Source: Botryllus schlosseri (lineage: Eukaryota). Taken from it: a stretch of DNA of 64,000 bases. The notes under the pieces were generated by a model. It was not told where the DNA came from. It did not search any database and saw only the letters and a program-made list of their open reading frames with translations. A program made the translations under genes and the position numbers. The first letter of the stretch is position 1. Every line of letters begins with the position of its first letter. The stretch spans positions 4,216,001 through 4,280,000 of the forward strand of contig CM119372.1 in assembly GCA_051294905.1 (NCBI GenBank), written 5' to 3'. Shown here in pieces: positions 6,001-51,300 of the stretch.

Positions 6001-9000
6001 ATACCGAGTTTGAAAATGAAAAATAATATATGACTGGCCCCCTAAAGATTTGTCTAAAGTCATAATACTCGAAAGGTTCACTATACATCTGATGAAGCCT
6101 ATAGCTAGAGATAGCACGACAATATCGAAAATACTGTACGACGAAATGCCTCACCTTAGCATCTGATAAAAGCTCCCATTTCGGTACAATATAAAAGTAA
6201 ATTCCGTCTCCAGCTCCCTCGAGAGTAACTCCACGAAAAAATAGGATAATGAGAATAAGATAGGGGAATGTTGCTGTGAAATATACCACCTGGAATAACG
6301 CAGAAAACAGGCGAATCATGCCCCCAAAAGAATAAAATTTAATAGATTACGATACGAGACTGACAGACTGTATACTTACTTTCCCTGATGACTTTACTCC
6401 TTTGGCCAAACACACGAAGACAACGATCCATGCCAGCAACAGGCAAAGACACAGATCCCACAAAACTTCTCCAGGGTCATCAATGCCCGTACTTCTATCC
6501 ATTCGCAGAACTCTGTATCTGTACAGCGTGCAATACATGCAACATATAGTAATGGATCGGTTTTAGGGTTGCCATATTTCGCGAGTCGGAAAGAGGACAC
6601 TTTTTTCAAATCGCAAAGTTTAGATTACTGGAATAGAAAACTGACGATTCTGAAATTTGTCAAAGCTATAAAGGAGGACGAATTCCCAAAATGGAGGATA
6701 TTTAAGCGTCCCGGGGCACATTTTCGGTTTCCTGAAAACGGAGGTTAAATCCTCCTAATGGAGGACATTTATGGTAGCCCTAGTTGGTTTGAATTTTGCG
6801 TTCCCCATTCAATTTGCCTTTTCCGTCCCTATGTCGCATATTCAATAGCACCAAGAGTTCTGGTGTATAAAATACGACTGGTTTACACCACATTACTATT
6901 TATTACGCACGATATATATATATATGTCTGATTGAGAGATATAGAGTATTCACATCGATGTCGACTATTATGCAGGCTAAATACAGGAGCAACATTCATA
7001 CTTCCAGTATTCCTCGCTTGGGCTAACCCGTTTTGGTGCGTCTGTTGAGTTGATCGTTTGGTTAACGCCAAGTGTAGTAGTATAATCTGGTGACGCCGTC
7101 GTGGAGTTTGCAAAAGTATCATTCTAAAAGGGATTGTTAATAACAAATTGTTAGTAATCATATCTCCGTTCGGGAAATAAGCCAAGTTAGTTCGTGATCT
7201 GTTTTAACACGTGTGTGAGGCCTATAGCATTAAACATGATGTCGTCAACGGGCTTAGCTCATCGACAGTATGGATGAAGCAGGTCAAAATTGTAGCTCTG
7301 ATGTTTATTGGCGAAATGATTCGCTCTATTCAGACTTTCATACCTCTGTCTGTGGTAATAAGTGTATTTGCTTAACTTCACGTACCAGAATAGGCAGTAT
7401 TGCATTTCAAGTTATTACGAACCCACGGTCACTCACTCCGAGGCTTTGTTGACAAACGGCATCCGTATTCCAATCTTCACACGTCAACGTCCACGGCAGA
7501 ACGGATTGAAATGACGCAAACAAGTAGAACAACGCGTAAGCGATTACCATGTTGTAGTAAATGGAGACCAAGGCGGATACTGCGATCATTCCTACCCCGA
7601 TACCTGAAATGATTGAACTGTAATCGAGAATAATCCCGCCTTCGTATAGATCGGAACCCAGATGACTGAGAGTAGACCGTAAAGCAGGGGTTCCCAAACT
7701 TTTTAAAACTGTGTAACCGTTCGTATTACATACATGAACGGCGTACCTCTCACAGCTAATGCTGCATAAACAGTACGCAATTGTATGACAAAACACAATA
7801 ACAAACTATGTAGTTACACTTTCAAACGCCATTTCACTGTGATGGATGATCGTGGAGTTACTCCAAGAGTAAATCTATTCTTGGAAGTGTTTTGGAAATT
7901 CTGCCACGAAATGTGTTCGGCGTCCTACACATTTGCGCATTCATGAAAAAACCTTGCTCACAAGTTGCAACTGCAACCTTTAAGTGAAGGGGAATGTAAT
8001 AATAACGCGTAACGCTTGCGACGACACCTTTGGCTATGATCGCAACATGTAGGCTACCAATATAGTCATTTCTATCTATCATCTCATCTTGAAGATATTC
8101 TGGAATAGCGGTCATGTATATCATAGGAGAAATAGGAGATCTCCACAGACTCATTATCTCCAAAACACCAACAAAATTCCTGAACAGCAATATGTTAGTA
8201 CAGTGGTTCTCAACCTTCTTGTCTTCGTGGCCACCCTTTGAACCGTCACGGACCCCCGCGGACCCCCTTGAGCTTTCGTTCCAAATTTGCTCAATTATCG
8301 TCAACTGTCTTGTGTAAATGTAGACTAGTGATAACAGCCACAAAATGATTTGTTTTGAAAATAACAGCACACTATATGTAAAAATTGGGTAGACTTTTTT
8401 ATTTCGAAGGGAATTTTCCAGCTGTATTTATTGTCTTGAAAATCAGCGTCTTCGATTTGATATGAATGAGTGTCGAAAATCCACTTCCACAAAGATATAT
8501 TGGTGGTGAATGTAATATTAGAGTAACGCTTCCGACGACAGCTGTTGGGGTGAGTTTCTAATGAACATATCACGTCCAGCCTATATATTCATTTTTCTCT
8601 ACCATCTCATATTAAAGTCATTTAGTAGTTTTATTACAGGAGAAAATGTATTTCGTGGCAAGGATTCAACTTCTTCATTGGGACAGATTTGCAAATTTCA
8701 AACGACCGTTTACTAATTTGCTGAGACTGACAATTCCAAATCCAAAATGTTTTGCAAACATCTCGAAGTCACCCTGTTCTACCTTGCTATCTCCGACATT
8801 TTCTTTTTCACAAACCCCTACAAAACATCTCTAAACAGCAATATGTTTGCATCAGCAGGCTATTGGCAATTTGACAATTAAAATGAGTTTGCACAGTCGG
8901 ATATTTCATCTCAGATGACCATTTCAATGATGTGAGTCCTAACGTTTTAGTTATTATGAAGCGAAACTGGATCATGCTTTTCCTAATTAAAAATCTATTA

Positions 9001-10195
9001 AAAATTAGGCTGTCACTCATTTTACAAATTTAGAGGCTTCGTGGACCCCCTGAAAATGCTTCACGGACCCCTGTTGAGAACCTTTGTTTTAGTCTAGGTA
9101 AGCTATTGGCAATTAGGCAATTAAAATGAGTTTGCACAGTGGAGTATTTCGTCTCAGATGGCCATTCTGTTTATGTGAGTCCTGAAGTTTTAGCAGTTAT
9201 GAAGCGAAAGTTCTTCGTGATTTCTTTAATTTAAAACAAAATAAAAATTAGCAACTAGTTTTGCAAATTCGGGGGTTTCGCGGACCCCCGGTTGAGAACC
9301 ACTGGTATAATGTTAAAAATTCATGTCTAGAAACTCGGACGAGTTGCATATATCTAAGCCCAACCGTAGTTAGTTTCATAAAATCAATTGCCTTAAAGGT
9401 TTTCGTTGGCTCCTAATCACCGGCGAAGCTGCTAAAGCAATGACTCTCTGAGAGTGCTATAATTAGGCAGATATGAATTGCAGCAGCAAACGTCCGAGGA
9501 CTATCGATGCATAAATATCATAATTCGTAATATCATAACAAAAGCCAAATGCTTGTATATCACTCATTCCACTGTCGTGCTATATCATCAGGATGATAAT
9601 ATATACGTGTCTGGCACCAGGTCAGGTTGAAATACTTCGCAAACATGACCTGTCACTGGAAGAATGAGGGTATTTCCAAGATTTTGTATTCACCCCGACG
9701 AGTGTGTTATTGAGCTGATTGATGAATGAGTTATGATAATACACCACGGATACAGTCACGTCGATGGATATGTGTAGCTGGATGCTTTTTCTTACCTTTA
9801 AACGCAGGGCTAGCTCTCCAAGCCGACACTGGTCCAAGACCGGAGAATTGACCCAGGGTGAGCTCCATTAAAAACAACGGTATACCGGCCAAACACAACA
9901 TGATGACGTACGGAATCAAAAACGCCCCTGAAAACATGATCATCATAACCAATCTCCCAGTGGGGTACAAGTTAACAAAAAATGTTGTTGATGATAATAA
10001 TAATAATAATAATGATTCCTTCAAGCGAACCGCTTCGGTAGATGAGAAAATACTTACCTCCACCATTCCTGTAGCACAAATATGGAAAGCGCCAGACGTT
10101 TCCCAATCCGACGCAATAACCGATGCACGAGAGTAGAAATTCAATTTGCCCTCCCCACTTCCCACGGTCCTCATGCTCATTGACAGTACCTGGCC
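77..10195 (-). CDS. SLC6A7: SLC6 Na+/Cl- dependent amino-acid transporter, proline transporter (PROT/SLC6A7)-like; 14 exons, N-terminal exon not securely found
   Basis: Exons (minus): 10195-10058, 9927-9796, 7603-7437, 7123-7002, 6518-6380, 6289-6155, 4729-4626, 2650-2526, 2461-2349, 2016-1885, 1823-1724, 1664-1549, 480-304, 241-77 (stop). All are GT-AG and phase-consistent. Motifs: [99 protein letters not shown]. Confidence 0.93.
3368..3554. mobile_element. hAT-type MITE
   Basis: 8-bp TSD CGCGTATA at 3360-3367 and 3555-3562. Right TIR gttgggaagcactg; left TIR degenerate. Confidence 0.6.
3751..4378 (+). mobile_element. 5'-truncated I-group LINE of a different family (RNase H end + CCHC + 3' UTR + (TAA)n)
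   Basis: NEVADELA...[18 protein letters not shown]...[20 protein letters not shown] to a stop at 4259. Clearly homologous to the C-terminus of the full-length ORF2. Tail aattaataataataa. Confidence 0.9.
5588..5905. mobile_element. hAT (Charlie-like) MITE
   Basis: TIRs cagtggttcccaac / gttgagaactactg. Perfect 8-bp TSD GCTTAGAG. Confidence 0.9.
6564..6782. mobile_element. hAT-type MITE
   Basis: TIRs tagggttgccata / tatggtagcccta. TSD atcggttt vs gttggttt (6/8). Confidence 0.7.
8201..9304. mobile_element. hAT non-autonomous element with duplicated right end
   Basis: Left TIR cagtggttctcaacc. Right ends gttgagaacctttg (9086) and ggttgagaaccactg (9304). About 250-bp tandem duplication. Confidence 0.75.
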
Positions 10196-13100
10196 CTGTT
10201 TTCTAACGAAATTAACAACATGCATTAAATATCGCGATCAAGGCGGGAATGGAAACTATACACTTCCCGATTTGTGAGCTGGAATTTCAAATCGAGTTAA
10301 ATTTATCATATATTATTTTCTAAATTCGATATTAAATCCTCTCACCGTCTCGTCGCCCATGCTGCGTATGCTTTAATCTGTAGGCCAGATGTCCTTAAAT
10401 TAAAAGCGTATGGGGTCATTCACAACAGAGAGTATGATACAGTCTAAAAATTAACAAACACAAGAAATAATATCTGATTCTAGGTAGCCAGTTTGATTCT
10501 GCTGTCTGACGCGTGACGCGTGTACTTTATTTTGGGTTTACCAATTACATACACCTATTTTTTCAGGTTTTACGAGAGACGAGAGTTCAATGGAATAGTA
10601 CCCGTTCTATTATACAAAATGCATTACTGTGAAATTCCAGCAAATGGACGATGTCACTCCTTACGTCAACATTGGTTTCATAAAATTACGATACAAAGGA
10701 GTTATAGGAATATCGTGATTTTTATGGATATCACAGCAAATAGTTCCTCAATTCCGAATACAACTATTCGCAGAGCTGTCTTACTGTAATTTTTCCGAAT
10801 CACGTCCACGAAATGTAGACTCCAACAGACATATGCGTTTCAAAGCCCTAACCGACACGACCGAATCCCACCCATGAGGAGCCCAAGCTCGAATTGGGGT
10901 CGGAAATTAGTAGATAAATCAACAGGGTTGGATATATTCAACTTGAAAATTTGTCTTCGCGTTTCAAAAGATTTACTGTAACTGGATTAAGTGGCGGGAT
11001 AGAGTCCGGTCGAGGTCGACTCAAAAATCCCTTCCCAAGTGTTAGAGGTTATCTAGGCTTCTCGCCTTCTGATCCGCTTAAGCGTTGTCTTGAAAAGCCT
11101 TGAAGTGGGCCATGTCACAAGTCGGCAGCTACGGAATCAAAATAAAGAATATCGGCCTGGTGTAATAGATCATTGCAGTCGAAAAACACAATGAATACCA
11201 CAAAAAAACACTGTAACCAGATCCACCGATTTTGTAGGGTGCACAAACTGCACAAGCACATGTATAGAAATGATTCAAACTATACCAAAAAGTGGGGTCA
11301 TCTTAATATCGATTGTGACCGGCGTAGACTGAGCCATTCGGTACCTGACGAAAGTAGGTTCCCTTTTAGTTTAGTATGTTACGTACCAGCGATTCTAATA
11401 TCTTTCAAGTGACGATAATAATTAATCGGACAATCGCAATACTTTGCCTCGTCCTAATCGCTGGTGCGAAGACAATTAATAGCGCGCATTTGTCATCTAT
11501 TACCTACATCAAAGTAAAGTCCAAGCACATTCATTTGCATGCGTGAAATGAACTGCTTATGCGTAGGCCTATATCACTGCCAATGAGTTTTGTATACGCA
11601 CGTTCGATTTGTTTAGTAGCCTACTGCGGAAGATGTCAGATGTAGTTTCAGGTAGAATATACCAACGTGGTACATGTGATTATTGTATATGTGTGATATT
11701 ACCGATCGCGTGTTCTGGTGGCATAAGCTCCCTGAAGTTGCGTTTATCAGCAAGACCGATCCCAAGCCTTTTAAGGGAGGGGCTGACAAAGTGCTGTTAA
11801 GGTGCCGATGTCTTTCAAGCGCAAAATATTCATCACATTTTCATAAGCTACCACGTGTAGTTTTCTCCGCTGATCTCCGTATCAAGTCATCAATAGAATA
11901 TTACAGTCACTCCAATAGTAGTCATTTCACTCAATTCAAACGTTTACCAAATCCTAAACCCCTTACACCTGACTGCTTCTTTAGCACATAATGGTTGAAC
12001 AAATGACATCCGGGCCCTCCCTAAATCGAGTTAGGGTTAGAGATAAGGTTAGCTTGTGATAAAGTTATAGCTTGGATATTTTGAGTGAATGGCTATCCTG
12101 ACACTAGCTGTTTTGACGCTCGCTATTTTGAATGCTTCGCTGTTATGGCACTATATTTCATGACAGTCAGTATCTTAAATCCTCGCCAATATGGCGCTAG
12201 GTGTCTTGAAGTCGCGGTTTGGAGACTTGGTGTTTCGACACGCGAGCCGAGAAAAAGGCTTTGAAACGATGTCATTGGCGGATTTCACTGATAAATCTGG
12301 ACCAGAAATCTAGTGTCTCGCGATCCCAGGCGAGACTTGAACTTGAACATTGCCGTGCGAAACGAGCCAAGCTTGCTCTACAGACATTTGCCATTATCGT
12401 GCTTGTGGGAAGGAATTTAGATTTCATTTGATATGAACTGAACTTAATTCAATATCCAGGTTCTCGCGAATTCAGTAATTCTACTTCTAATCTAATTTGG
12501 AAAAAATGTGTAGTTATAATTCTGATTCTAATCTAATTTGAAAAATGAGTAGCTATAATTCTAATTCTACTCTAATTTGGAAAAACTGAAAACTTTCTAG
12601 TTATCAAAGTTTGTCCCAGGTTGTCTACTGTTATGGACTTGCGACTACATCCGTACCTCTGAAATATCGTATAATTATCCCATACGTATAAGGACGGAAG
12701 TGGTGGAGATTGTTTGCTAGCCCCGAGAGAAGTTGACAATGCAAACACTACCGGGACGACCCGAAATTCATTTTATATGACGGATGACATGTCACTGCAT
12801 TTTAATTTCAAAAGATATTCGGAGTCGCTATGAATGCGAAACTGTAAGCTGTCATATTATCAATCACGCAAGTTTAAACTTGCTCGCAATTTTCGCTCTG
12901 TCGAAATGGCCACAATCTTTTGTCAACCAATCTCTCTATTGTGCCGCCAACCGTTATTTATATCATAAGTACTAAGTACACCTTGAATGCTGTAAATAAC
13001 ACATTTCGCGACATCATGCCACAGTAACCCATAACCTTACACTTGTTAACAAAAAGCATGTTTGATTTGTGCAATCGTCATGTGGAATATTGGAAACCGT

Positions 13101-25699: not shown

Positions 25700-28194
25700 A
25701 TGGGAGTTTTGACAGACGATGTACCTCAGCATCGCCCGAGTCCGACGGGAGGGGTCGAGTCTACAAACAACGAGTTATGCCAAAGCAACGACGGCACGAG
25801 CGCGAATCTTGATTCGATCACAGGAAAATACTACGATGTCAAAACAGACTACGCAAACGCAGAAAACATTATGAATTACATCGGCAACGGTATCGATGGC
25901 ACACAGTACACAGTGTCACCTCCCACCGGGATTTCAGACGATACGAATTTCGTCCGATCGCGAGGATGCAAAAAGGAGAAGAAGCGAACGGAATGCATCA
26001 ATTCCGCCTTTTCAGACTTGCGACGACGTATCCCGAACGTGCCTCTCGATACGAAGCTGTCCAAGATCAAGACGCTGCGACTGGCCACGTCTTATATCCA
26101 ATACCTGACGGATATCGTGCGGAACTCGGACCCGGAAGACGTGCGAGACGGGAGGGAATTTCGCGCTGACTTGAAAGCGCTGAGGTCGCGAGAAAGACGA
26201 CGGGAACTGCATCGGGTAGGTCCTTTGTATTTTAATTTTTGATTTATTTATAATAAAATATGTTTGCACTTCGAGAGCGATGTTGCTCCTCTTTTGGATC
26301 TAAATGGCCCCCCTTTAACGACGAGCTCAAAATCAGGGTCGCAAATAGTAATTTTAAATTGTACTAGGTAAAAAATTATTAGATTTCTATCAAAATATGT
26401 AATTACAAGATGAAAAGTGCTACCAATTTCTGTGGTTTATACGAAACCGGTTCATATATATCCATAGACACGCGCCTAGCATGTCTCCCAAGTACCAGAA
26501 TAATTTAGTAGAGGCCCGTTCGAAAGAATGTAACACTTATTGCCATTAAAAATACGCATATTCTATGTTCAAGAGTACAAACGAGTCGTTATTTTGGTAT
26601 TAATGGCGTTTGGACTACTACGGTCAATTGGTCATTTACAACAGGACCATAGTTCTTTATCATGCTTCCTGGCCTGCCGACTGGTAGCACGCCCCACCTT
26701 CTTTCTAGGCCTTTCTAAGACACCGCATTCGCTGTTAGTAATAGCTAATAGGGTTATCAGTTGCATTTTTGGATTGTCATGTGTCATCGGTTATTGCTTT
26801 CGTTTCAATTCAATTTATTTTTGCGGCACGCTGTCACGTGAGCCTTGCAATGTGCTGCATGTAGTACCAATAAAAGAGGCCACTGAAAATTCTGATAGGG
26901 AAATGAAATCGCATTCACTCGTGGTTCCATGGTTGTATCCTATGGTACACTATACCGCGGATCGAGATCCCGATTTAATCTCTCACAGAACACAGCGAAT
27001 AATACCTACAATAACGAGTTAGCAAATTGCAATTCATCAAAGCATGATTGTTTGTTTGTGGTATTCATGGTTTTTGTCGACTACTAAATGGTCAATTGGT
27101 CATTTACACCAGGCCAATGTGTTTCATTTTAATTCTGTAGCTGCCGACTTGTAGCACGGCCAACTTCTAGGCTTTTATAAGACACCGCTTGCATGGATGA
27201 TATGGCGAGCTGAAGTCGGCCTCGGTCGGACTTGGACCCGCAACCCATTGGCGTTGCAGTATTGGCTTATACCACTACGCTATCCCGCCACATCAAAGCA
27301 TAATTCTTTACACAGAAGCAAACCAGTGTAGCGACAAAACCCGAAGACCCGGGACACGAAAGAAACAACAGCTACCCAAGCAACCGTAATCTATGTGACG
27401 ACATATCGCTTAGAAAGAAAGGACGCACAGGTTGGCCAGAAGCTGTCTGGGCCATGGAGCTCGAAAACATCCCCCCGTCCTTGATAGAACACAACATACC
27501 GCCCGCGCATCCCGACATCATAACATCAACCCCTCACCAAGCCCAACCGCAACTTCACAAATGCTACACAAACTATCCAACGCCGCATTTTGACGGAGAA
27601 GTATCGCCGACCAGTCAACAAGACCTCAGTCACAACCCGACCATAAGTAATCATTACGGTAACACACTGATTGGATACAGTATTATACCCACCATCCGCG
27701 AAAACCAGGGATATGTCAGCGAATCATTCGCGACCTACGACGACTTCGTGCCATATTTACCATACGCACCGCTTCCTCTACCCGGAGCGTCGTCTTTTAG
27801 CAGGCGATATTCCCAATTCCTTCCCCCGAACGACTCAGAGCAACAAGGTTATCAAATCGCGAATTTACAAAGCCTACCAACGATCGAATCAGCTGGACCA
27901 ACCGCGTATGAGCCCGGATGTTATCAAAACAATGTTGAAGACGCTGGCGGTGACCTGCAATCGTCCGTAGTGGCTGAAATAACGCTGATTCCCGATGGAA
28001 ACTACCAATGGGGGGAAGCTGAAAATGAAGTAGGCGCGATGCAAGAGAGCAAATCGATGCAGAGCAAGTTCGCGGAACTGAAGACGGTATCGGCCGCCAG
28101 CATAAGGATATCGACATCGACTGTAAACGGTAAGCTGTACACTGTACAGGGTATACTGTACATGTACTTGTACGTACATATTCGCACTACTTAG
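25700..28194 (+). CDS. HAND: HAND-family bHLH transcription factor with long C-terminal extension
   Basis: Exon 1 is 25700-26215 (b[49 protein letters not shown]), donor gtaggt, phase 0. Exon 2 starts at 27316 (cacag|) and encodes [18 protein letters not shown], the HAND C-terminal motif KGRTGWPQHVWALEL. It stays open to a stop at 28194, or splices at gtaagc 28130 to a small exon 28236-28285. Confidence 0.92.
27050..27291 (-). mobile_element. tRNA-derived SINE in HAND intron 1 (partial body copy also about 26600-26740)
   Basis: Minus head gtggcgggatagcgtagtggtataa...gggtccaagtcc has A- and B-box-like motifs. Body is shared with 42120-42695. Confidence 0.7.
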
Positions 28195-30679
28195 TCAAAC
28201 CATGTTTGTAGTCTATTTCCAATTCTATCCAACAGATTTTCAGGGAGCACTACTTGCTTTTTCCGATTTGGAATTTGAAAAGTAGAAAGTCACGTTTATA
28301 AATGAAATAGTCCCTGTATCGCGGTAGCCGCGTACGTTTTCAAAGATTGCACCCATTCGTGGTGTCATCAGTCATTTTGAGTTGGTCGCGTCAATGAATC
28401 TTTTAATTTCGAATGTAGCCATCTCCGATTAACCGCTAATCGTATGCGATCCCGCAACCAAATCTACTTCGAAAACAACTTGGGAACTTTCCATGCCTTC
28501 CATATATTCTATTCGACTTGAAGTAGCATTTCTGTATTGGCATGTCTTGGAAATCGCTTCCGCCACTTGCAATTGAGCGATAATTCACAGCGGTAATTCT
28601 ACAACTTCACAACAACGATTTAAATACATGTTGAAAATGTGGAATCACAATGATGGCGACTATCGGCCTAGTGTAAAATGCCCAAAATAGTGGAAACACC
28701 GTGAACACTGAAACGGCAGCAGCATGAGTTGAATATAGGTATATTACGAAATTTGTGCTACATCGTAGGGTCCGAATCATGTGATCAGCAGTTTCTATCA
28801 TCTAACTGCACTTTTACACACATGCATCAATTATATAAAGATATATCCAAGTGGTATCACGTTGCCTGTGCCATTTTCCGGCGCCTTGTCGGGGTCGTAC
28901 TCGAATACAGAGCCCCGACATATGATATATCGCCATAAGAACTGTTTGATTTGACTTTTCCCCCGTCGGAATGGGTGGGAACGCAAAACATTGTCGTAGG
29001 GTTACAAATCTATGAACTTGTGAAACTAATCCCACCACTGATTAACGAGACATGCCTAATATTCATGGCAGTAAATTTGAAAACTGAAAACGTGCATCGC
29101 ACACGCACGGTTGCAATCCATAAGCTCAGCCTTGAACAGTTATGCATTGACTCAGCGGCTCGTATAAAACGACACGGTATGTTGACGATTGTTCCGATCA
29201 AACTCCGATTTCAAACGATTACATTGATATCAAAGTTAGCGATATTTAGCTATAAATGACAATGATACAACGTCTATTTAGCGAAACAGCAGGACTTCGA
29301 ACACAATGCACAAGACATCGGAACTCAATTGACTACAATTGCATAACCATTAACCACACAGCGCATTATTCGAAATCCTCAGGGACAATCCTTCACGTGG
29401 TACTTTGACCGGCTTCCAAGTATAACATTACTTCTGATAAACGCACGCGGCCATAAAATGAAGAAACGGTTTATGATAATTGGATGCTTTTACGATTCGA
29501 AGTTATTCGGAGTGCGTTTTTACCGTATCACCCGTATTGGTGCTCTATCCGTACACATGAAATTATATTCAGACCGCATCGAGTTCAAGTTACACATCCT
29601 CGTATCAAAATTGCAAGTCAAATTTAAAAGGTTCGCGATGATTCATTTGTTTACGAAAATGTGGGATTGTTAAAACAAAATACACTAATTCAGCGTGATG
29701 GATGTACAATGCGCAGTTTCTCACTACTCAGTGCACACACGGCCACTCCCTTTATTCTGTGCTCTGATCGCATATAGCCTATACACTATAGCGATATCTC
29801 AAGGCACACGCACTGATCAGTATCATTATAATTATTAAATTTCCTCATTTCAAAACACCACAAGACTGCGATGCAATTAACAGTTAGGAAAATGTCGAAA
29901 CGACTTGGAGTAGTCGGGGCCTACTTAAGTTATCGCAGGCCCCGAAGTAGTCTTTAAAATCAGACACCCACCAGGGCTTAGCCCTTGACGATTAGAAGAA
30001 AAGAAATGAGGGAGAACATAAAATGGCTAGTGATGAAAATGAATGATTCATGTATCGATAAGTCACATCGAGATCCACTATCCTCGAAAGTTGACTAGTA
30101 TTCATTCAGTAGAAATTGCATGTATTTCGATTTGAATGTGGACTGTGAAACGGTACATTTTGCAGGTTCCGGGATATTCACCGCGTCCGGAAACGCGGAG
30201 TTGCCGTGTTTTGGAGCCACCAGAGTTGTAGAATCGAGCTGCACCGCGTAAAAGTCAGCAGACTCGAAACCGCGAAAACACACTGCCGGGAACCCGCCGC
30301 AAATATGTATCAGGATGTGCGGTTTGGTATAACCGAAATCAAATGTCAGAACTCTTGATAACGCAGGGACGGGTATGAATGAGTAATATTTTGCGTCACC
30401 GACAGCGACGGTGTCTATTTTTGCTTCCGAGTGCCGAGAGCCACACGCATTTGGTGACTTTTTATATTTACTGTATTGGTACATGTCGCAACTTTATCCC
30501 GTGATAAATCAACGCTGCCGCGATAAAAGCGCGCAGCCATTTTGAAGTTTGTAGGGAGTATGAGTTTACTTCAATCATTTCTACGATTTCAACAAGGTGG
30601 TGCCGAATAGCTAAACTCTTGCCAATTCCCTAACTCCTATCAGAACCCGTAGACTGTCGATTAGCAACAATCGTCGTAT

Positions 30680-36290: not shown

Positions 36291-39200
36291 TCAGATGTAT
36301 CTACCACTTGATAGAACAAATTCAGCAACAGCGGGCGATAAGGCTGGGTTAGACAACACGTGAAACAAAGTGAAATGAAGATTGAGCCTAGTACACTCGT
36401 CGCGCAGAAATCTGCGATAAAATTGATATTCCGGACATACAATAACAAAATGGTACACCGTTTCAGGTACGTGACAACGTTCACAAAGGGGGGACGGAAC
36501 ACAACCGATTTTAAATAGGTGACTCTTCAGCTTGCAGTGTCCAGTGCGGAGCCGGAACATGATGGAGTCGAATAGACGATTGGAGAGCATCGGCGCAGGC
36601 GCGAGGATTGATTCTCGGAACTGACGGTAGTGCGACCCGGTGTCCGAAGAACGGTATTGTTCTTGCCAGAGGTCAACACACAGGGATCTGATTAAGGCCT
36701 TGGCTTCAGGTAGCGAAACTGTCGCTGCATCGGTTGGAGGAGGACATAACGATGCCGTCCTAGCAAGTTCATCGGCTTGAGTATTACCCGAGATCCCACT
36801 GTGTCCTGGGATCCAAGCCAGAGTTACATGGAGGCGCAGATTGGTGATCTGAAGTAAGGATTCGAAAATATTTAGTAAAATAGCGTTGGTGCTGCACGGT
36901 AGCTGTGTTCGCGATACATTTGAAATAGATTTGAGGGCACCGAGACAATCTGACAGAATGATATACCGAGAGTGCGATGAGCCATGTTCTGTAATCCACT
37001 TCAAGGCATGAAGAATGGCGCTCAATTCGGCGGAATAACTGGAATATGCACTCGGTAACGCTTTGGATAATTGAACGGAGTGGGCGGGAATGAACAGGCC
37101 GTAGCCAACACCGTTCTCGGTCTTGGATCCGTCAGTGTACATCGTTAGGAAACCTGCGTATTTTTCAAAAATGAAATCCAGGCTATTAGATAAGATAACT
37201 GGTGGCGTGGAGCACTTCGATATAGTCTCGCAAAGTTCGAGATCGACGTTTAGACACGGCGCGGTCCATGGGGCGGGAAGAGAGGTTGGCTTGGTATGCA
37301 GTTTAACTGCTCGCAGTGAGGGTATCTGTGTGATTATATTAAATGTTCTGAAGTTGGGGTTTGTTAGATGATAAATCTCGTGCCAAGTTCCTTCTATGAG
37401 CTGTTCATGGTACGGAATCATCGATGGCACCGTTTGCAATTTACAACGGAGGTTGAGACATAGCTGGATATGACGAAGACTGAGCGGCATCTCATTACAA
37501 GCAGCTTGTAGCGCGCATATAGGTGAGCTTCGCATCGCCCCACAGCAGAGACGTAGTGCACGGTTCTGGATTGTTTGGACTTTCGCAAGGTGACACTTCG
37601 GGGCAAAGAAGTATGCTACCATCCCATACTCTATGACAGGACGTATCAATGCTCTATATAGCATCAAGAGGGATCTTTTACCAGCGCCCCATGCCGTCCC
37701 TGTAAGAGTTCGTATAAGGTTGAGTCGTTTGCTACATTTATCGACGATCTTGTCGATGTGGTATTTGTAGGACAATGTTTTGTCGAAAGTCACTCCTAAA
37801 TACCTCACCGTATTTTGCACTAAAATGGATTTACCTCCGAGATGCAAGGACACCTGGGGGAATTTTCGTTTGCGAGAGAATATCATGGCCACGGTCTTGG
37901 ATTCCGAAATAATGAAGCCCCACTTTTGGCACCAGTCGTGTATGGCGTTGAGGGATATTTGCACATTATCAGCGAGTGATGGGATAGACAATCCACTGTC
38001 CCAAACAGCAACATCGTCTGCATACATCGCATGGTCACATTTAATAATCTGTGGTAGATCATTAATCATAATCGAGAACAGAATCGGGCTAATCACACAA
38101 CCCTGGGGCAAGCCATTTTCAAGGGTATATTCTGCCGAAAGAGAGTTTCCAACTCTCACTTGAAACACCCGCTCCGTCAGAAAGTTTTCAATCCACAAAA
38201 GCATGTTACCTCGTATTCCCATCTGGGAAAGTTTATACAGCAAACCTTTTCTCCATACCATATCGTATGCACTCTGGAAATCGATGAAAACGGAAACAAC
38301 TGATCTCTGATTGTTGATCGCTTTGTAGGCGGTATCGTGGAGACGCAGAATGTGATCGAGAGTGCTCCGACGTTGACGAAAACCGGATTGACTGGGAGAT
38401 AATAGATTGTTCGATTCAACGTACCACTTCAACCTGTACACAATCATGGTTTCCATTATTTTACAAATGTGACTAGTTAATGAGATTGGCCTATACGACT
38501 TGGGTTGAGACTTAAGTTTTCCACTTTTCAGGATGGGGACGACAACTGATCGCTTCCAGGATTCGGGTATTTCACTTTTGTTCAACGATCTGTTGAACAA
38601 CGCAAGAAGATCAGTGAGCGAGTTCTGAGATAAATTTTTAAGCATTTGATAGCAAATTGAGTCACCGCCGGGAGACGATTTACCACGTGAAGCAATTGCG
38701 GACATCATTTCTTCCCGGCTGAAAGGGATATTAATTGGGTCCGCAGTAGAAGAGGAAAAAATAGGCTGAATCATGCTATCACACATTTGGTGCGACTGGA
38801 ATGCCTCTGTGTAGTGATTGGAGCTGCTGACATCACAAAAGAGTTTGCCGAATACATTAGCTTTTTCATAGTCGTCCGAAATAGTGATATTATTGTCAAC
38901 GATATGTGTGATTGCTCGAGATGCAGTTTGACCGGAGATTGACCTTACCACATTCCATACCTTTTTAAAACCCGAGTGCTCGTTCAAGGATGCACAGAAT
39001 TCCTCCCAGCATGTGCGTTTTGCTGCCAAGATCGTTTTTCGGCATTCTGCTCTCATCTTCTTGAACTGTACCACGTCTGCTGTGGAGAATGTCCGCTTCA
39101 TTTTCTGAAAAGCTGCTTTTTTACGACGGATTGCTCTTTGACACGTTGCAGTCCACCAAGGCACTGGGTTCTTTTCGGGGGTCTTCAGACGCGGTATTGT

Positions 39201-40004
39201 TTCCTCAGCAGAGACGAGCAGGAATTTTGTTATGGTTTCGTTCAAACTTTCGGCATTGACATCTCGAAGGTCATATGAGCATAGTTGGTCGTTCACAAGT
39301 CTCGAAAATGTAGGCCAGTCTGCTCTATTAAACATCCATCTTGGCGGTCTTGGTATTCTGCGAAGGATCCTGTCGTTGTAGGTGGTGAAGACGACAAGAT
39401 GATCGCTCCCAAGAAGTCGCTCTGATACCGTAGTCAGGCATTTTGCCGCAATATCTCTAGAGACCAGTGTTAAATCGATAAGGGACCAGCGATTCACTGC
39501 ATTAGTTGAGATGTTGAGTCTGGTAGGAGACCCTGAATTCAGTAACACCATGCTATGATGGTCCATAACATCATAAAGCAGCGTTCCGCGTTGGTTGTTC
39601 ATGTGGCTCCACGACGTATGGTGAGCGTTGAAATCACCGCATATAATGGCCCTTGACGATAAACTATCGAAAAACTGCAGGTCGCATCGATTCAACGTAC
39701 AGTCTGGGGGTATGTAGACATTACAGATGGTAATATTGCAAACCTTCACCGCGAGAACTTCGAGTTTGGATTGTTTTGTAAAAAGAAGACTTGATGAGAG
39801 AGTTTCAACGACGAAAATGCATAACCCACCCGAGTGAAGAGTTTTGTCTTGCCGATATATGGTATAGCCATGTATCCTAGGAGAGTACCTTTCAACAAGA
39901 TGCGTCTCCTGCAGAATTATAACGTCAGGTTTCGCTTCTAGCGTCGCGACATAGTGTTTGAGTTCATGCAATTTTCGATAGATACCGCGACAGTTCCATT
40001 GCAT
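36291..40004 (-). CDS. LINE ORF2: AP endonuclease - reverse transcriptase - RNase H - CCHC
   Basis: APE motifs QWNCRG, QETHL, GDFNAHH, SDH. RT motifs YRPISLTS, QSGFR, GLPQGCVISPILF, YADD, YLG. RNase H motifs YTDGSK, AEL, SDC, WIPGHSGISGNTQAD. C-terminal RLRTGH...CERC...ETVYHFVIVC. Confidence 0.96.
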   Translation of the reverse strand: MQWNCRGIYRKLHELKHYVATLEAKPDVIILQETHLVERYSPRIHGYTIYRQDKTLHSGGLCIFVVETLSSSLLFTKQSKLEVLAVKVCNITICNVYIPPDCTLNRCDLQFFDSLSSRAIICGDFNAHHTSWSHMNNQRGTLLYDVMDHHSMVLLNSGSPTRLNISTNAVNRWSLIDLTLVSRDIAAKCLTTVSERLLGSDHLVVFTTYNDRILRRIPRPPRWMFNRADWPTFSRLVNDQLCSYDLRDVNAESLNETITKFLLVSAEETIPRLKTPEKNPVPWWTATCQRAIRRKKAAFQKMKRTFSTADVVQFKKMRAECRKTILAAKRTCWEEFCASLNEHSGFKKVWNVVRSISGQTASRAITHIVDNNITISDDYEKANVFGKLFCDVSSSNHYTEAFQSHQMCDSMIQPIFSSSTADPINIPFSREEMMSAIASRGKSSPGGDSICYQMLKNLSQNSLTDLLALFNRSLNKSEIPESWKRSVVVPILKSGKLKSQPKSYRPISLTSHICKIMETMIVYRLKWYVESNNLLSPSQSGFRQRRSTLDHILRLHDTAYKAINNQRSVVSVFIDFQSAYDMVWRKGLLYKLSQMGIRGNMLLWIENFLTERVFQVRVGNSLSAEYTLENGLPQGCVISPILFSIMINDLPQIIKCDHAMYADDVAVWDSGLSIPSLADNVQISLNAIHDWCQKWGFIISESKTVAMIFSRKRKFPQVSLHLGGKSILVQNTVRYLGVTFDKTLSYKYHIDKIVDKCSKRLNLIRTLTGTAWGAGKRSLLMLYRALIRPVIEYGMVAYFFAPKCHLAKVQTIQNRALRLCCGAMRSSPICALQAACNEMPLSLRHIQLCLNLRCKLQTVPSMIPYHEQLIEGTWHEIYHLTNPNFRTFNIITQIPSLRAVKLHTKPTSLPAPWTAPCLNVDLELCETISKCSTPPVILSNSLDFIFEKYAGFLTMYTDGSKTENGVGYGLFIPAHSVQLSKALPSAYSSYSAELSAILHALKWITEHGSSHSRYIILSDCLGALKSISNVSRTQLPCSTNAILLNIFESLLQITNLRLHVTLAWIPGHSGISGNTQADELARTASLCPPPTDAATVSLPEAKALIRSLCVDLWQEQYRSSDTGSHYRQFRESILAPAPMLSNRLFDSIMFRLRTGHCKLKSHLFKIGCVPSPLCERCHVPETVYHFVIVCPEYQFYRRFLRDECTRLNLHFTLFHVLSNPALSPAVAEFVLSSGRYI

Positions 40005-40021
40005 CAGGTTCAGCGATTGGG

Positions 40022-41392
40022 TCAAGCTGAAGGCTGTTCTGATGCAGACAGAGCAGAGGACTGACAACGGTTGTTGCAAGTATCAGAGACTGATTTAAGG
40101 GTTGCACTCTCAACTGTGTACCCCAGGTATTTGGAGGAAACTTCCGCGACTAGGCTAAATACATTGCTATTCCCGTCTTTGCATGCTGTAACAGCAAGTT
40201 GTACGATTTCCGCAACAAGCGCTAGTAGGCGAATTGGATCGAGTTGTGCTATTGCTGCAGCTGTGCTATGGACTCGGACTGGGGGTTCTCGGGGTATGGG
40301 CTCATTATCGAAACGTTGGTTATTACGAGGCACGAAGTAGCGTAGGTCGGCGTCGTTGGGGGCTGGTGTCGTAATGCGCGATGTATTCCTTCTACCATGT
40401 CTAAGCGCTTGCGAGTACGCGAGGTCTCGGCTTGGAACGTTATTACTAGCGAGCTCTACATCTGGCGTAATCGGGCTAGGATTTTCGCGTAGTAGTAGGG
40501 TTTCTTTCGCCTCGGAGTAGGAAACCTGATTGCGTTCTTTAATTATTTGTATCCGCGCTTCTTCCTTGTATTTAGGGCAGCCTGCGTAAGCGGCACTATG
40601 CGGTTTGTTACAATTGAGACATTGTACTAAATTTTTACAGTCGCTGTGCTCATGATCTGATCCCCCACATTTGGTACAGCAATGTTTTCCACGGCATTTC
40701 GTCGCTGTATGGCCGAAACGGTTGCAGTTGTAGCATCTGGTCGGTGGCGGGTTGTACGGTCGGGTTGGGAATCGGAGATAGGCGAATGTTAGAAACCGGG
40801 GGACTGTAGTGCTAGTGAAATTCAAAAGAACTGATTGGCAAGGTTCAAAGCCTTCGTCTGTCTTCCTACGAAATCGTTTGACATAGGAAACCTTGTACTT
40901 TTGGAACCCGTCCAGCAACTCGTCATCTGATATCTCTATGGGCACGCCCCAGATCACAGCCCTAGATGTTGGGGGTTTGGGTAAGAAAACGGAGGCCTTA
41001 ATCGGGATGTTAGTCTTTGCGTGGGTGAGCGTATCGCATTCCAGGAGTTTCTTTACTTGCTTAGCGTTAACACAAGATATAAGCAGATCGCCAGAGTTAA
41101 GCATGCGAATGCTTTCCGAACTACCGACAAGGTGAAATATTGCACTGTTGACTGCGGTGGGGTGATATTGCCTTAACGGCCTATTTGTACCGGTCACCAA
41201 AACCTTTAAATTATTTCCATCGGAGCACAGCGCCCCACTAGCTACGTTTTCAGCACTGTTGGACGATGAAGGTGGCGCATAGTGTCTGGCAGGAATCTTA
41301 GCATCTGTACTGCAACTCTCATCGCTATCGCCAAGGTTCTCGTCTTCTGGTCGGACCCGCTTCCTTAGGGAAGTGTGATCCGACACCTCCAT
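40022..41392 (-). CDS. LINE ORF1 gag-like nucleic-acid-binding protein with three CCHC knuckles
   Basis: First ATG at 41392. Knuckles CYNCNRFGHTATKC, CTKCGGSDHEHSDC, CLNCNKPHSAAYAGC. Confidence 0.92.
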   Translation of the reverse strand: MEVSDHTSLRKRVRPEDENLGDSDESCSTDAKIPARHYAPPSSSNSAENVASGALCSDGNNLKVLVTGTNRPLRQYHPTAVNSAIFHLVGSSESIRMLNSGDLLISCVNAKQVKKLLECDTLTHAKTNIPIKASVFLPKPPTSRAVIWGVPIEISDDELLDGFQKYKVSYVKRFRRKTDEGFEPCQSVLLNFTSTTVPRFLTFAYLRFPTRPYNPPPTRCYNCNRFGHTATKCRGKHCCTKCGGSDHEHSDCKNLVQCLNCNKPHSAAYAGCPKYKEEARIQIIKERNQVSYSEAKETLLLRENPSPITPDVELASNNVPSRDLAYSQALRHGRRNTSRITTPAPNDADLRYFVPRNNQRFDNEPIPREPPVRVHSTAAAIAQLDPIRLLALVAEIVQLAVTACKDGNSNVFSLVAEVSSKYLGYTVESATLKSVSDTCNNRCQSSALSASEQPSA

Positions 41393-45393: not shown

Positions 45394-48300
45394 TCAATGC
45401 TTCAAGGGGTCGAAGGCGTCCAGCGTGAAACTGCCCTCGGAAACGGCCAGGCCTGTGCCGAACGCGCTCTAAACAGGAACGTAACGTTAACGACGGTGTG
45501 ACGAGAAGATATGTTTTTTACCACGGGACGCGCCATCAATACGTTAACGCACGCAACTAGATAATTATAACTGTTTTATTAGAGCGAATTGTCGCTAATC
45601 TAATTCGTGAAATGTTTCTATATACTGTAATTTGGATTGGATAAAGAATTGAAACAATGATTCGCTCGTAAGGCTTATATTTTCGATACTCGATGGAACC
45701 GTTACAATTGACACCAGAATCGTATGCGAGCACCAGAATCGTTGGTTGGGTTCCAGATTAACAAAATATATGAAGTGCATTGTGACAACATACGCAGTAG
45801 ATGTAGTATAATGATGAGGGTCAAGACCAGAGTCCTATCGGTATCGTATGTTTGAGCTGATAGCTAGCAGATAACCCCGATATCATCGGCCGAGATTCAA
45901 AAGATTTTAGCCTCAAAGCAAGGCTGATTTCTAAAAGTTCATACGATATCTGTCGACATAACCCAAGTTATCGTAGGCCCAGGTTCAGAGCGTGTAAGCT
46001 ACAAGAAATAGATCAATATTCCCGGTCTAACAGCCTCAGATCATAATACCGATTCCCTACTTCCACATTGTGACGTCACGAGAATTGCCGGGATTTTTTT
46101 TTACCTGATACTGATATTTATTTCAAAGCGTGATGTCGACTCAATATTTTCGGAAAACCGATAAAAAGTGACTTTCATACAGTAAGAATACCAAGAATTG
46201 GCTACAGTGCAAAGATAATGCCGCAAGTCAGACCCAGAAAGGCCGCACGCGTTTCACGCCAACTCACAACAGCAAGTTGCCTCGTCTTCTCCGCAGAATC
46301 GCCGCCACCCTTACTAGGGGGCTGTCTTTTGCAGCGACCGCGCGGAAAATATTTCCCCCTCCATCTCGTACCGGCCGCGCCGCGCCTCTGCTTTTTATTT
46401 TTACGCGTTGGCGGGCGGGTGATCGCGGGAGCGTTCTTTTGACCGCGAATTGGCGACAGAGGGCAGCGAGAGATTTCCGGGTTCTGCGAAAGAGAGTCGA
46501 AGAGAAGAGGGAAAGGAGAGAGAAGCAGAATTGAGAATACAGACAGGCTGGTCCAGACTTCGACAACTAGATAATTTTAATTGTCTGATTAGATTAATGA
46601 AAGCGATAAGCCGATAATCTAATTCTAATCTTATTTGTGAAATATTTCTATGCCTTAATTTTAATTTTACTCCTATTTCCGTTTCTTCTGAAAATGATGC
46701 AGGAGAACTGTATATTGCATATCGAGCCGAGCTTTCTGAACAGACATTTGCCATTCTTGTGCTTATGACAATCAACTCAGATTTAATATGAACTGAACGT
46801 GACAGAGTGTCCACGCTTTCGCGAATTCAGCAGTTATAATTTGGTTTAATTTGACAAAACAAAACTGTGCAGCAATAATTCTAATTCTGATCTAATTTCG
46901 AAAAGTTGTCCGAGTGAGGGCGGGTCACCGTAAGAACTAAAAAGGATATAAAACTGGGACCGTGTCAAACTCAACTTGCGTCGCGGGCCGGATCATTCAA
47001 ATGATTCAAATTCCATGCCCTTGTTTTTTGCTTGAATACTCAATTATGAAGCCTACACAATAATATATTACATTATATAACGGATCATAGGGTTTTACTC
47101 TAGCAACGCCTTTATTCGGCGACAATGAAATCAGCAAAATTAAGTTGTAAGTAACGGTACGGTAATATAACTGCTAAAATAGTAGCCTTATGGGCGATAT
47201 GCGTTAGCATATTGCTACGATTGCTTTGCTTTAGTCGTAATCTGGCAACAGTCATGTGTATGCGCTATGAGGAATACGCGAGATTCGGGTTTCACCGTAT
47301 GCCGAGGAGCGTTAGTCATTAGCGAAATAGGAGTGCGTCCACAGATATTTGAATTATATTTTTGTATGACAATTATATTCTCCATGTAACTTGCATACAG
47401 CGGTCTCTAAGTATGTCGTTTTCACTTCTGCGAATAACTACTTTTTGGTCCGTTTTGAATTGAGTGTAAATGGCGGCTCTTTCTTGCCGATGGTGACTAA
47501 GAGTGAAACTACAACACCACTGTCGGATGGTTGTAACGTAGCCTGTGAACCTACTCGACACTTGCCGTCTTGAGGGATTATTTGATGCTAGTATTTCGCA
47601 CAGAATTCCAACATTTGTCGGAAAGGTGCTGGATGATATAGCCGTTTTTCAGAATCGCTTTGCGGGCCGGATGAAATCCTCTGGCGAGCCGTATGTTTGA
47701 CATCCCTGATATAAAAGGATAATGCCACGAGCAGATTTGGACGACGCGAAATCTAATTAGCAAAATTCTAATCAAATTTCCGGTTGTCGCAAAAATGCTA
47801 CCGAAAAAACTGTGCAGTGCGAAACGAGCCGTCAGCGATGTACAGACATTTGTCATGTTCACGCTTACGAGAACGGGGATCCGAGTTGACACGAGGTGAC
47901 CTTGGTTTTGCCGTATTGCTTTTTAACCTGGATTTCAATTCGATTTCCAAGTCGTTTCATTTGCGAATCCAGAAATTCTGATTCTAATCGAATTAAAAAA
48001 GACATCGGTAGCTATAATTCTAATTCTAATTCGGAAAAGCTGGAAGGTTTCATGTTTTTTCCGCTCTGGCAGGAAGAAGGAGATGAGAAGATAATAACCA
48101 ATGAAACAGAATCCCAAATATGAAGTTACACACTCCATGGTAGTGACGTCGCAAAAGAGAATGCGTTGGGCGCCGTGTCAGATTTTGAGTGACTGCGATA
48201 GGATTATTATCAAAAGGTACATATTTGAATTTTCCCTATTATTCATGCTAGTGTGATGTCATTATGAGTGATACTCGACTTTCCCGGGAATCAAACCGAA

Positions 48301-51300
48301 CCCGACACAGGTTTGAAGATTTTCCAATGAAATTACCCGGTGCACAGCACAGGATGAGGGTTTTTATGGAGTCGGTATTGAATATACATAAAGCAGATCG
48401 CGTCAGCGCGGAAACGGCATAATCACGATTACACTCCACACCGACCCCTGCATTTACACTGGATTCTGTATTGCGCAATGCGCGTATATGATCAATGTCA
48501 TCATATATGATCAATACGTCAGCCTGACGCAAACTGGTTTTTTCACGTTACTAATTGGAATAGCGGCTGCGTAATGTTTCCTTTACCGTGTTGTTGTTAT
48601 GGTGTTCATGATGTTTGGCGACTACCACGGTCATTAGGGGTGTTCAAAAATGACTTTTTTTCTCAAATCGTACTGGCTACTTGATAAAATTGTTAGGTTA
48701 CCTAATTTAAGCCTACTCACCAAATTTGGTTCAATTCCAGCCAGTAGCCGCATTGCTGTATGTAGGCTGACGTAATTCTACATGTGCAGTGTGCACTGCG
48801 CAGTATGTGGCAATAAACAAACACAATTAAGCTGCTTTCATGTCAGCAAACTGGTTACGCTACGGTCGGCTCATTTCTAGGGCCGGACACAACGATCAGC
48901 GCAATACTAGTCGGGCATCGATTGTAATTTGTACTCGAGTGGAATAGTGGAGTTTTCAGAGAAACAGAAGTATACGCCTTCATACCAAGAGCACTAATTC
49001 TACAGTTGAAGCCTCGAAGCCTCCGCTAGCCATATTTCATCAACGGAAAACTCGTTTGAACCCAATTATTGCTGCTGCTACGACGTCACAATAAGCGATA
49101 CTCGAATAATCCGAATCTAAGTACCATGTACTGCCGATTTTACCGCAGCCCTACGCATTTCGAGGTAGCGCAAATTTTCTCACCTGCATGTCCAGGATAT
49201 CTTTGGGGCTGACGCAGGAATGGGGCGCGGGCGCGAACGGTTCGGCGGGAAACGGATTCGCTGTAACGAAGACAACACAAATTCAAACAAAGAAGCAATA
49301 CGCGCGTGTAGGATTTCCGCATATACATACGGGTTACACTCGTGCTTAGGCTGTAATTGCGTGGATGAAAATCGGTGCATTTCCCTAATTTCCACCACAG
49401 CCCAGGGTGTAAAACAGGCTGGCAGAACCTTCGGTGCTAAATTTTGCTTCAACAGTCATTCCAATGAGGGAAAACTAATCAAATACACCAGTCCTACTCG
49501 TAAACGGAACCCACTCCACTCCTAGGATGCGTCTACATAAGTATTTTGGTATTTGAAACATGTTTAAGTTCATCCATTGAAGGGGTGTAAGAGGCAGACA
49601 TTGCACCCGAATGTGAGTTCGGAGAATACTGAGTTAGATACGGGTTTCGTTCACAGCATACCACCTACCTTGCATAGCGACTAGTCGGGTCCCTCTGGAA
49701 GGCGGTTGCGGTATCGTGGGCACAAAAGGCCGCATGTTGAATGGATCCTGAAAACGAAACAGCTATTAGACAAGCAGACACGCGCGTGTAAATCCGGCTG
49801 AAGCGACACGCGGGCAGAGAAAACAGTGTAGAACAGAACAGGAATACCCAAGATCAGAAAGAAGCGGAACAACTCCACAGTATAGTATAACCTGAGACTC
49901 CCAACCCCCAGAAACGCGTGACGTCTCGCAACCCGCGCTATCCAAAATATCGCTCTCCCGGCAATCTAGCAAGTTCAGCCGAAACTCCGCGGCGCCCGTC
50001 GTGTCAGGGCGCGGCGCAGGCTCCTTCTCGACACCGCCACGAAACGACGCCTTTTCAGTATCGAAAAGCGCGCCATTTTCACGAACGTTCCGATCTCGTA
50101 ACCGAGTTTGCTCTCCCGCCCTTGGTAATGAGATGGTCGGCGTTGTTTCGAAGATGGACTGCCTAGTTTTGTTCGTTTGATTTGATTTAAACTCATTGGC
50201 TTCTAAGTATCGACTAGACTTTACAGCTTTCGGCAAGGCTATAGAAGATACACAGTCAACACAAGAAGCATCTTTACTAGCTGCATGTCGAAAGGCCTCC
50301 ATCAACCTATTCACGTTATCGTACGTAGTGTCTACGGTGCTTTGATCGCGCCGCGGATAATCGCGCCCCGCGAGCATCATGTAACCATCTTCTCCACTCA
50401 GATGACGCAAAGTGGCGTCGATATTCGCGCCCCGCGTGCAGTCCCCGCTTTCGCGCAACACGTAAGAGTATTCTTTGGACGACGACCCGGACGTAACGCT
50501 GCTGCTGACGCTGGTCAGCTCGTCGCTTGAATCAGTCTGGTCGTAATACGCGCGCATTGCTTTCAAACTGTTATCAAACGGTATCCTCGTGTCTGCCTTA
50601 GATCTTTTCTTCAAAGAACCGCGCATTGTGACGTCACTGTCTTTTAACAGCTCGCTGGGGGAGTGCGCTTGATGATTAGCCCGCGGGTCTATCATCATTT
50701 TATGTAAAGTTGCGATCACGTCGTCCATACTGGCGTAAGTTCCAGCGCTTTCCGAAACGGCGGGGGATGAAAGGCGATCAAAGCACGCCGCTTCGCTTTG
50801 ATCATTTTTCGGTTTCTTTGTTGATAAACCGGGGAGAAGCGAGGATAGCACGTTTTTCAGCCTCTCTTCGCGCGGCGCCTTTGATCTCCTGTGCCGTTTC
50901 CCGCTTTTTCTGATTTTTTCGCCGGAATCCGTTTCCGGGACTGAAACGCGGTGCGTCTGATCTCCCGGAAGCGCGTTTCCGCGTGGAGGATGAGGAGGAA
51001 AGATGGAAGAAATCGAATGCAAAAGAGAAGGATTGATCTGGAAAGGATGAAAGGAAAAAAATCACAAGAAAATGTGAAAGACATTCAATATTCCCATGAG
51101 AAAGCGCGCGAAATTCTCCCGCGTCTCTATGACGTCGTGCACGACCGAGGAAAATCAAAGCGTTGTGTTATTCATCAAGATAAGATTTGTGTGTTACGCC
51201 AACCTAGTTTGTACCAACAGGAGTTTGTGTAGATCACGAAATAGTACACTGAGCCTAAGCCTATTCTGTTTCTGAGCTTAAGCTCTGTTGGCCTTAATTA

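Follow-up and report, generated by a model that had tools for sequence, protein, structure and literature searches.

A lineage-wide C-terminal tail in the probable three-exon Hand orthologue of Botryllus schlosseri

The chordate cardiopharyngeal network, for which ascidians are the main invertebrate model, has Hand among its core factors. Within a window of 64,000 nucleotides (nt) from Botryllus schlosseri (assembly GCA_051294905.1, contig CM119372.1, positions 4,216,001 to 4,280,000 of the forward strand; coordinates below count from the first letter of this window), a gene for a bHLH (basic helix-loop-helix) protein carries the HAND C-terminal signature GRTGWPxxVWAxEL, and its reading frame continues far beyond this motif in the same exon. 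The locus thereby raises the question of whether the continuation belongs to the protein and, if so, whether it was gained recently by loss of a stop codon, as a preliminary description of the locus had proposed. In all probability, this ascidian is stolidobranch-like and the gene is its orthologue of Hand (Hand1/2), with three exons and a product of 471 amino acids (aa). The 249-aa tail that follows the motif is then a lineage-wide feature and not a recent read-through, and it can be considered as a putative disordered regulatory region.

By its sequence, the window gene is placed in the HAND subfamily of class-A bHLH factors and closer to HAND than to Twist, Scx and Tcf15. Its bHLH domain was 71% identical to that of a cnidarian HAND1-like protein (E 3.6e-13) and was the best match to it within its own genome, while the Styela orthologue described below matched HAND1/2 proteins from many phyla. 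The HAND signature was found in 129 of the 130 proteins collected. Two HAND-family genes are present in ascidians, namely Hand and Hand-r/NoTrlc (PMC7693978; 10.1101/2021.02.10.430586), the second of which is also called Hand-like (PMC4356046; 10.1101/2021.02.10.430586). The B. schlosseri genome likewise contains a second HAND-like bHLH gene, on contig C8. The bHLH domain of this gene is more divergent, with 49% identity to cnidarian HAND versus 71% for the window gene, and no GRTGWP motif was present within ~14 kb downstream of it. Therefore, the window gene was assigned to Hand and not to Hand-r, and the C8 gene is a candidate orthologue of Hand-r/NoTrlc.

Intron ends were set by canonical GT..AG sites at the junctions of public contigs. 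The open reading frame (ORF) 25700-26242 codes for the bHLH domain and is left after codon 172 at the donor CGG/GTAGGT. The acceptor of exon 2, ..TTTACACAG, ends at 27315, and the frame from 27316 opens with KQTSV. Splicing of the three coding exons yields a coding sequence of 1413 nt plus the stop codon, and the final 28 of the 249 tail residues are supplied by exon 3. The gene is single-copy in the assembly of 495.5 Mb. A protein of about 460 aa with an extension of about 230 aa had been expected beforehand; the long tail is real, but both figures fell short and the third exon had been missed.

Logan contigs from four public runs (four studies, same species label) were aligned to positions 26120-30300. 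As this alignment begins at 26120, the bHLH part of exon 1 lies outside it. In run X1, a contig of 990 nt joined 26214/26215 to 27315/27316, with intron 1 removed and the whole exon-2 extension contiguous with exon 1. In X2, a contig of 1040 nt spanned 27657-28128 and then jumped to 30165-30300 and beyond. The X3 contigs (records 20-22) carried the same 28129-30166 junction, which was thus obtained from two studies. The tail is transcribed and spliced.

Past the motif the frame stays open, as the preliminary description had noticed, until the TAG at 28192-28194, and 221 stop-free codons follow the motif before the 28130 donor is reached. Such a frame is unlikely by chance: the probability of 221 stop-free codons was 6.7e-5 at the base composition of the stretch itself and 1.5e-6 at intron composition, and the remaining five frames contained 5-14 stops. 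The GC content was exon-like with 0.48-0.50 over the extension versus 0.37-0.42 in the flanks. It was ~0.41 just past 28200 and peaked at 0.51 at exon 3. Public contigs that carry this species label showed at least 26 differences in exon 2; of those listed, 15 lay at third codon positions, and 13 were synonymous (~181 synonymous sites) and 13 nonsynonymous (~632 nonsynonymous sites). The crude pN/pS, i.e. the ratio of nonsynonymous to synonymous differences per site, was ~0.29 for exon 2 and ~0.44 for the tail alone among these listed differences. No indel inside exon 2 was among the differences listed, the first one being located at 28136, 6 nt past the donor. In the divergent DNA contig of run X5, the listed indels started directly after the 28130 donor. 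Together with the spliced contigs and the conservation in orthologues, the preference for third positions and the lack of listed exon indels supported the extension being coding, as had been proposed.

The contig of X5, a DNA run, has 2669 nt; it covers 27231-29876 of the window and differs from it at 185 positions, with 75 gapped, over 2.6 kb. This divergence points to very high heterozygosity or to a cryptic sister lineage. The closest protein match, P0001 (85% identity), may come from such a diverged lineage.

A word-indexed search with exon 2 led to three proteins called on genomic contigs of sequencing-run assemblies. After trimming to exon 2, P0001, P0002 and P0003 showed identities to it of 85, 43 and 25%, respectively. 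They share an identical HAND motif followed by 232-242 more residues, and all three have the terminal block ..ELKTVS..SI.I.TST.NG. The similarity stopped precisely at the 28130 donor, after which each sequence enters its own intron, and the residues past the donor were conserved in no orthologue. The contig of the most distant of the three (L001, 17.5 kb) contains an upstream bHLH exon, the same G/GTAA donor and a candidate exon 3 starting with GFGTFTTS. A profile of the window protein and P0001-P0003 was subsequently searched against 1.84 billion representative proteins. It gave one extra full-length relative, the 'uncharacterized protein' XP_039266442 (467 aa) of Styela clava, encoded by LOC120341914 at 8001-10226 of locus L012 (OZ123514.1); beyond Styela, only two weak matches centred on the short motif were obtained from these representatives. 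The Styela gene agrees with the window gene in its three coding exons and in where the introns lie, and its last exon reads GYGTFTST versus (G)SGIFTAS in the window gene. A GULP1/CED-6-like gene is syntenic downstream of Hand in the window, L001 and Styela (tblastx; PID domain in Styela). Gene structure and neighbourhood thus appear conserved across the three loci.

The nearest relatives in a search with the Styela protein were the proteins of Ciona savignyi (346 aa), Ciona intestinalis (378 aa) and Clavelina lepadiformis (388 aa) as well as the contig protein P0015 (370 aa). These four have the same odd basic region and the motif GRTGWPE.VWA, followed by 202-235 residues. Every ascidian Hand recovered (Styela, two Ciona, Clavelina, P0015 and P0001-P0003) runs 202-242 residues past the motif. 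A stop right after the motif in orthologues had been named beforehand as the finding that would speak against the extension, and no ascidian found has one. With the shared basic region and a tail of more than 200 aa past the signature, the window gene fits the long-tailed ascidian Hand group, and in all ascidians sampled the frame of the tail has stayed open and part of the tail is conserved. The orthologue of C. savignyi is deposited as 'bHLH transcription factor HAND' (BAD18073.1/Q75UU2), and the C. intestinalis protein (NP_001071729.1/BAE06481.1) represents the same gene. Both accessions are presumably cDNA-project records, judging by the accession type. The tail is an ordinary, already recorded but under-described feature of the lineage, which has been present in Ciona cDNA records for approx. 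twenty years; no discussion of a C-terminal extension of tunicate Hand or of 'GRTGWP' was found in the searchable literature. The Ciona gene Hand is KH.C14.604 (PMC7693978), and its link to the cDNA accessions rests on the deposited name HAND.

HAND proteins were expected to end, as a rule, at the motif, and this was confirmed in a survey of the 129 collected proteins with RTGWP, whose length of 257-817 aa, if anything, favours long forms. No more than 20 residues followed the motif in 105 of them, 21-100 in 14 and more than 100 in ten; nine of these ten were tunicate proteins. The HANDs of teleosts, sea urchin and Aplysia end 2 residues past ..ELx. The typical HAND ending, within a few residues of the signature, is not a strict criterion of the family and is absent from the window gene. 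The tenth, P0010, a 453-aa model from the jellyfish Rhopilema, was considered as a long-tailed counter-example and rejected. Its motif is broken mid-way, indicating a mis-joined gene model, and nothing follows the motif in the RefSeq protein with which it clusters. Most of the 14 proteins with 21-100 residues carry a tail of 47-72 aa after an ELKKKF-type ending; in this set (P0005, P0119-P0123, P0128 and P0129), P0128 and P0129 are from the rotifer Rotaria socialis and the others are contig proteins. This short extension is apparently independent of the ascidian tail. A few of the 14 proteins with 21-100 residues past the motif are arthropod or bivalve-like.

The tail is composed of 11.6% S, 9.6% P, 6.4% Q and 5.2% Y. 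It has a net charge of -12 over its residues 121-200, and Y, F, I and L are interspersed. Pfam detected no family on exon 2 at E up to 1. The exon-2 part was predicted by AlphaFold2 (AF2) with a mean predicted local distance difference test score (pLDDT) of 44.6 and a predicted template modelling score (pTM) of 0.12, without any domain. The sole predicted helix was the HAND motif itself (residues 42-49 of exon 2), and the confidence was slightly higher at the DDFVPY..FSRR and ELKTVS blocks. Matches of the tail in the ESM Atlas, at best 0.77, were to T-box_assoc (T-box C-terminal) fragments; the score was too low, and they were taken as noise typical of transcription-factor tails. The composition had been compared beforehand with that of a transactivation domain. 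The tail does fit the compositional profile of an acidic/aromatic transactivation domain, as it is disordered by composition and in the AF2 model, net acidic and interspersed with bulky hydrophobic and aromatic residues, and the likeness extends that far only.

Table 1. Coordinates of the Hand gene, its predicted elements and related loci (window positions unless another contig is named)
Feature	Position	Strand	Description
Hand coding exon 1	25700..26215	+	172 codons, phase 0, from ATG to the donor CGG/GTAGGT; ORF and contig junction
bHLH domain, aa 90-137	25967..26110	+	Pfam HLH PF00010, E 2.6e-16, 59.6 bits (cutoff 20.7)
Hand intron 1	26216..27315	+	1100 nt, GT..AG; removed in X1 record 1
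Hand coding exon 2	27316..28129	+	814 nt, ends in phase 1
HAND C-terminal signature motif, aa 206-222	27415..27465	+	Columns invariant in 9/9 tunicate sequences
Tail, exon-2 part, aa 223-443	27466..28129	+	Predicted disordered; S, P, Q, Y-rich; net acidic
Conserved tail block, aa 286-302	27655..27705	+	Near-identical in P0001 and P0002
Conserved tail block, aa 312-339	27733..27816	+	Common to P0001, P0002 and Styela (..LPAASSFSRR); RRxS at 27802-27813, taken to be a putative basophilic-kinase site
SLPTIE block	27871..27888	+	Aligns with LPSIP (P0003, Styela) and LPSISTLC (Ciona, Clavelina); column P188 invariant in 9 sequences, weak evidence
Most conserved tail motif, aa 423-444	28066..28129	+	Abuts the donor; E, L and V invariant in 9/9
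Hand intron 2	28130..30165	+	2036 nt, GTAAGC..TTTTGCAG; removed in X2 record 13 and X3 records 20-22
TAG reached with intron 2 retained	28192..28194	+	Would yield a variant of 465 aa
Hand coding exon 3	30166..30251	+	Last 27 codons and TAA (30249-30251); (G)SGIFTAS...SSCTA; junction with 28129
GULP1-like neighbour	~45394-56131	minus-strand frames	L001 11553-17493; L012 16083-18226
Second HAND-like bHLH gene, own genome	G000:C8:1797008-1797637 (L005 1417-2046)	minus	First-exon ORF of 209 aa, basic region NRRKRERNVSIN

The tails themselves have diverged strongly. Between the window gene and Styela, the tails alone aligned by BLASTP with E 3e-9 over 134 columns, while the identity over the exon-2 part was 29% and the tail middle was unalignable. 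The alignment with the protein of L001 was confined to the last 21 residues of the tail (71% identity, E 2e-6). In the comparison of five stolidobranch-type with four Ciona-type tails by hhalign, the terminal ELKTVS motif was co-linear with ELQPVS of the Ciona-type tails, and the two profiles agreed in the relative position of the aligned block (columns 202-217). The nine-sequence alignment contained another co-linear block, LPTIE / LPSIP / LPSISTLC. The parsimonious reading, which these blocks suggest, is one origin of the tail before the ascidian radiation and fast divergence of a disordered region afterwards.

Several observations weigh against a lineage-wide, functional tail encoded by three exons. 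The hhalign match of the two tail types covered 16 columns with E 0.097, and the tail of Styela aligned with that of Ciona, weakly, over ..P.(F/L).EL..VS.. only, with a BLASTP E of 0.028. The pN/pS values are rough, as they were taken among the differences listed. The AF2 alignment had 9 rows, and a small folded element could escape at this depth. The support from RNA consists of assembled contigs and thus reports presence, not abundance. Finally, X1 record 1 was spliced at intron 1 yet unspliced through the 28130 donor up to 28233, which touches the question of where the protein ends.

This contig is the point in favour of a main product that ends at the TAG at 28192-28194 by retention of intron 2, with exon 3 being minor or non-coding. 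Such an ending is improbable. Both introns are represented in X1 by low-depth contigs, and a further contig of this run passes the exon-3 acceptor without being spliced; therefore, X1 carries pre-mRNA or DNA, and the contig reaching 28233 is read as pre-mRNA or a minor retained-intron form. Moreover, two other studies show the 28129-30166 junction, the residues past the donor are unconserved, exon 3 matches the last exon of the Styela RefSeq model and L001, and the listed indels of X5 begin directly past the donor. A shorter isoform that ends at 28194 after retention of intron 2 may nevertheless exist. Less can be said for the use of a short intron 28130-28235, which would yield a protein ending ..DFQGALLAFSDLEFEK. 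The sequence does offer GT at 28130 and AG at 28234-28235, as well as a frame open to 28285. However, the 28129-28236 junction was present in none of the contigs of the four runs, two of which show the 30166 acceptor, and the peptide is without counterpart in Styela or L001, so that this form is next to negligible. The preliminary description had left the choice between the 28194 stop and a 28130/28236 splice. The donor at 28130 proved right, but the acceptor is located at 30165/30166 and not at 28236, and the stop at 28194 is reached in one intron-retaining contig only.

A stop loss at the level of species or genus, by which a 3' untranslated region (UTR) became coding, would agree with the tail sharing its exon with the motif without an intron in between. 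It would also agree with the lack of a detected tail homologue outside tunicate Hand, as is expected for a sequence born from non-coding DNA. Nevertheless, the tail is present in every ascidian Hand recovered, including those of Ciona and Clavelina from other ascidian orders, and tail motifs as well as the position of the downstream intron are common to Styela and L001. The proposal of a stop loss in this genome or its near relatives was accordingly abandoned as highly improbable: all ascidians found have a tail of 202-242 residues, and therefore any stop loss would predate the ascidian radiation. An ancient event of this kind, in which a stop was lost and the 3' UTR exonised in the ascidian or tunicate stem, after which the tail was recruited as a regulatory domain and the N-terminus shrank in Ciona and Clavelina, is compatible with a lineage-wide tail and is possible, though on the whole unlikely. 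It is favoured by the stop 2 residues past the motif in other phyla, the tunicate frame that simply runs on in the same exon, the lack of tail relatives elsewhere in the profile search and an N-terminus of 9-22 aa before the basic region in Ciona (9 in both species), Clavelina and P0015 versus 126-229 aa in fish, urchin and Aplysia. On the other hand, the 3' UTRs of outgroups are too old to be expected to align, the tunicate sample consists of ascidians, and stolidobranchs hold both the tail and an N-terminus of 86-110 aa (86 in the window gene), so that a domain swap is not general. The more specific scenario is doubtful, namely a single origin in the tunicate or ascidian stem by loss of the stop two codons past the motif and de novo recruitment of 3' sequence, with the tail becoming the effector domain and permitting the near-total loss of N-terminal effector sequence in Ciona and Clavelina. 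If true, it would document that a core transcription factor of the heart had its regulatory domain relocated.

For the lineage-wide tail of the preferred reading, a function in activation or cofactor docking is probable. The tail would act as an intrinsically disordered regulatory region of ascidian Hand, in which the acidic and aromatic stretches (aa 312-420) would offer a surface for activation or the docking of cofactors. Its few conserved short motifs, namely the blocks FSRRYS and LPxI and the ELKTVS..I.ISTS motif at the end, may bind partners or be modified. With so short an N-terminus in Ciona, Clavelina and P0015, any effector function of these proteins would practically have to sit in the tail.

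Both introns contain repeats. A very high-copy repeat is located in intron 1 (~26960-27380), ending ~65 nt before the exon-2 acceptor, and a high-copy repeat in intron 2 (~29840-30143, in the region 29760-30180), ending ~20 nt before the exon-3 acceptor. Their summed contig depth reached up to 4e5 in a DNA run, and loose contig ends were numerous at 27086, 27176, 29840 and 30143. The region ~26620-26720 contains a partial copy that is related. On the minus strand, 27180-27290 resembles a tRNA-derived sequence by eye; ARAGORN and a repeat finder called nothing on 26200-30200. The longest open frame of the window, with 1263 codons at ~36294-40082 on the minus strand, has no relation to Hand and could belong to a transposable element.

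A lineage-specific and conserved tail, predicted to be disordered, makes up more than half of ascidian Hand and is nearly the sole part beyond the bHLH domain in Ciona. Therefore, equivalent effector domains with vertebrate HAND1/2 cannot be assumed, and Hand constructs that consist of the bHLH domain only or are tagged at the C-terminus call for care. The value of the results is modest and concerns gene annotation and functional work on ascidian Hand. In this genome, the gene model is fixed at three exons and 471 aa, and the Styela 'uncharacterized protein' LOC120341914 is identified as Hand and could be renamed.

By gene content and nearest relatives, the window falls among ascidians and, of the named ones, closest to Styela. 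Among known systems, the window gene resembles Styela LOC120341914, with which it shares the exon layout, the GULP1-like neighbour and the tail blocks ..ASSFSRR.., LPx and G.G.FT.S. Ciona Hand is alike in the odd basic region, the motif GRTGWPE.VWA, the tail of 202-235 aa and an ELxxVS motif ~30 residues from the end; however, it has 9 residues before the basic region versus 86 in the window gene, and the similarity of the tails is marginal. Hand-r is likewise a HAND-related bHLH gene in the same genomes, but the C8 copy has the more divergent bHLH domain and lacks a nearby GRTGWP motif. Canonical HAND1/HAND2 and most invertebrate Hand proteins share the HAND-type bHLH domain and the GRTGWP..VWA.EL motif with the window gene. 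Their basic region reads NRKERRRTQS versus KKEKKRTEC in the window gene, and they have a long N-terminal region and end 2-20 residues past the motif, whereas the window gene continues for 249 further residues.

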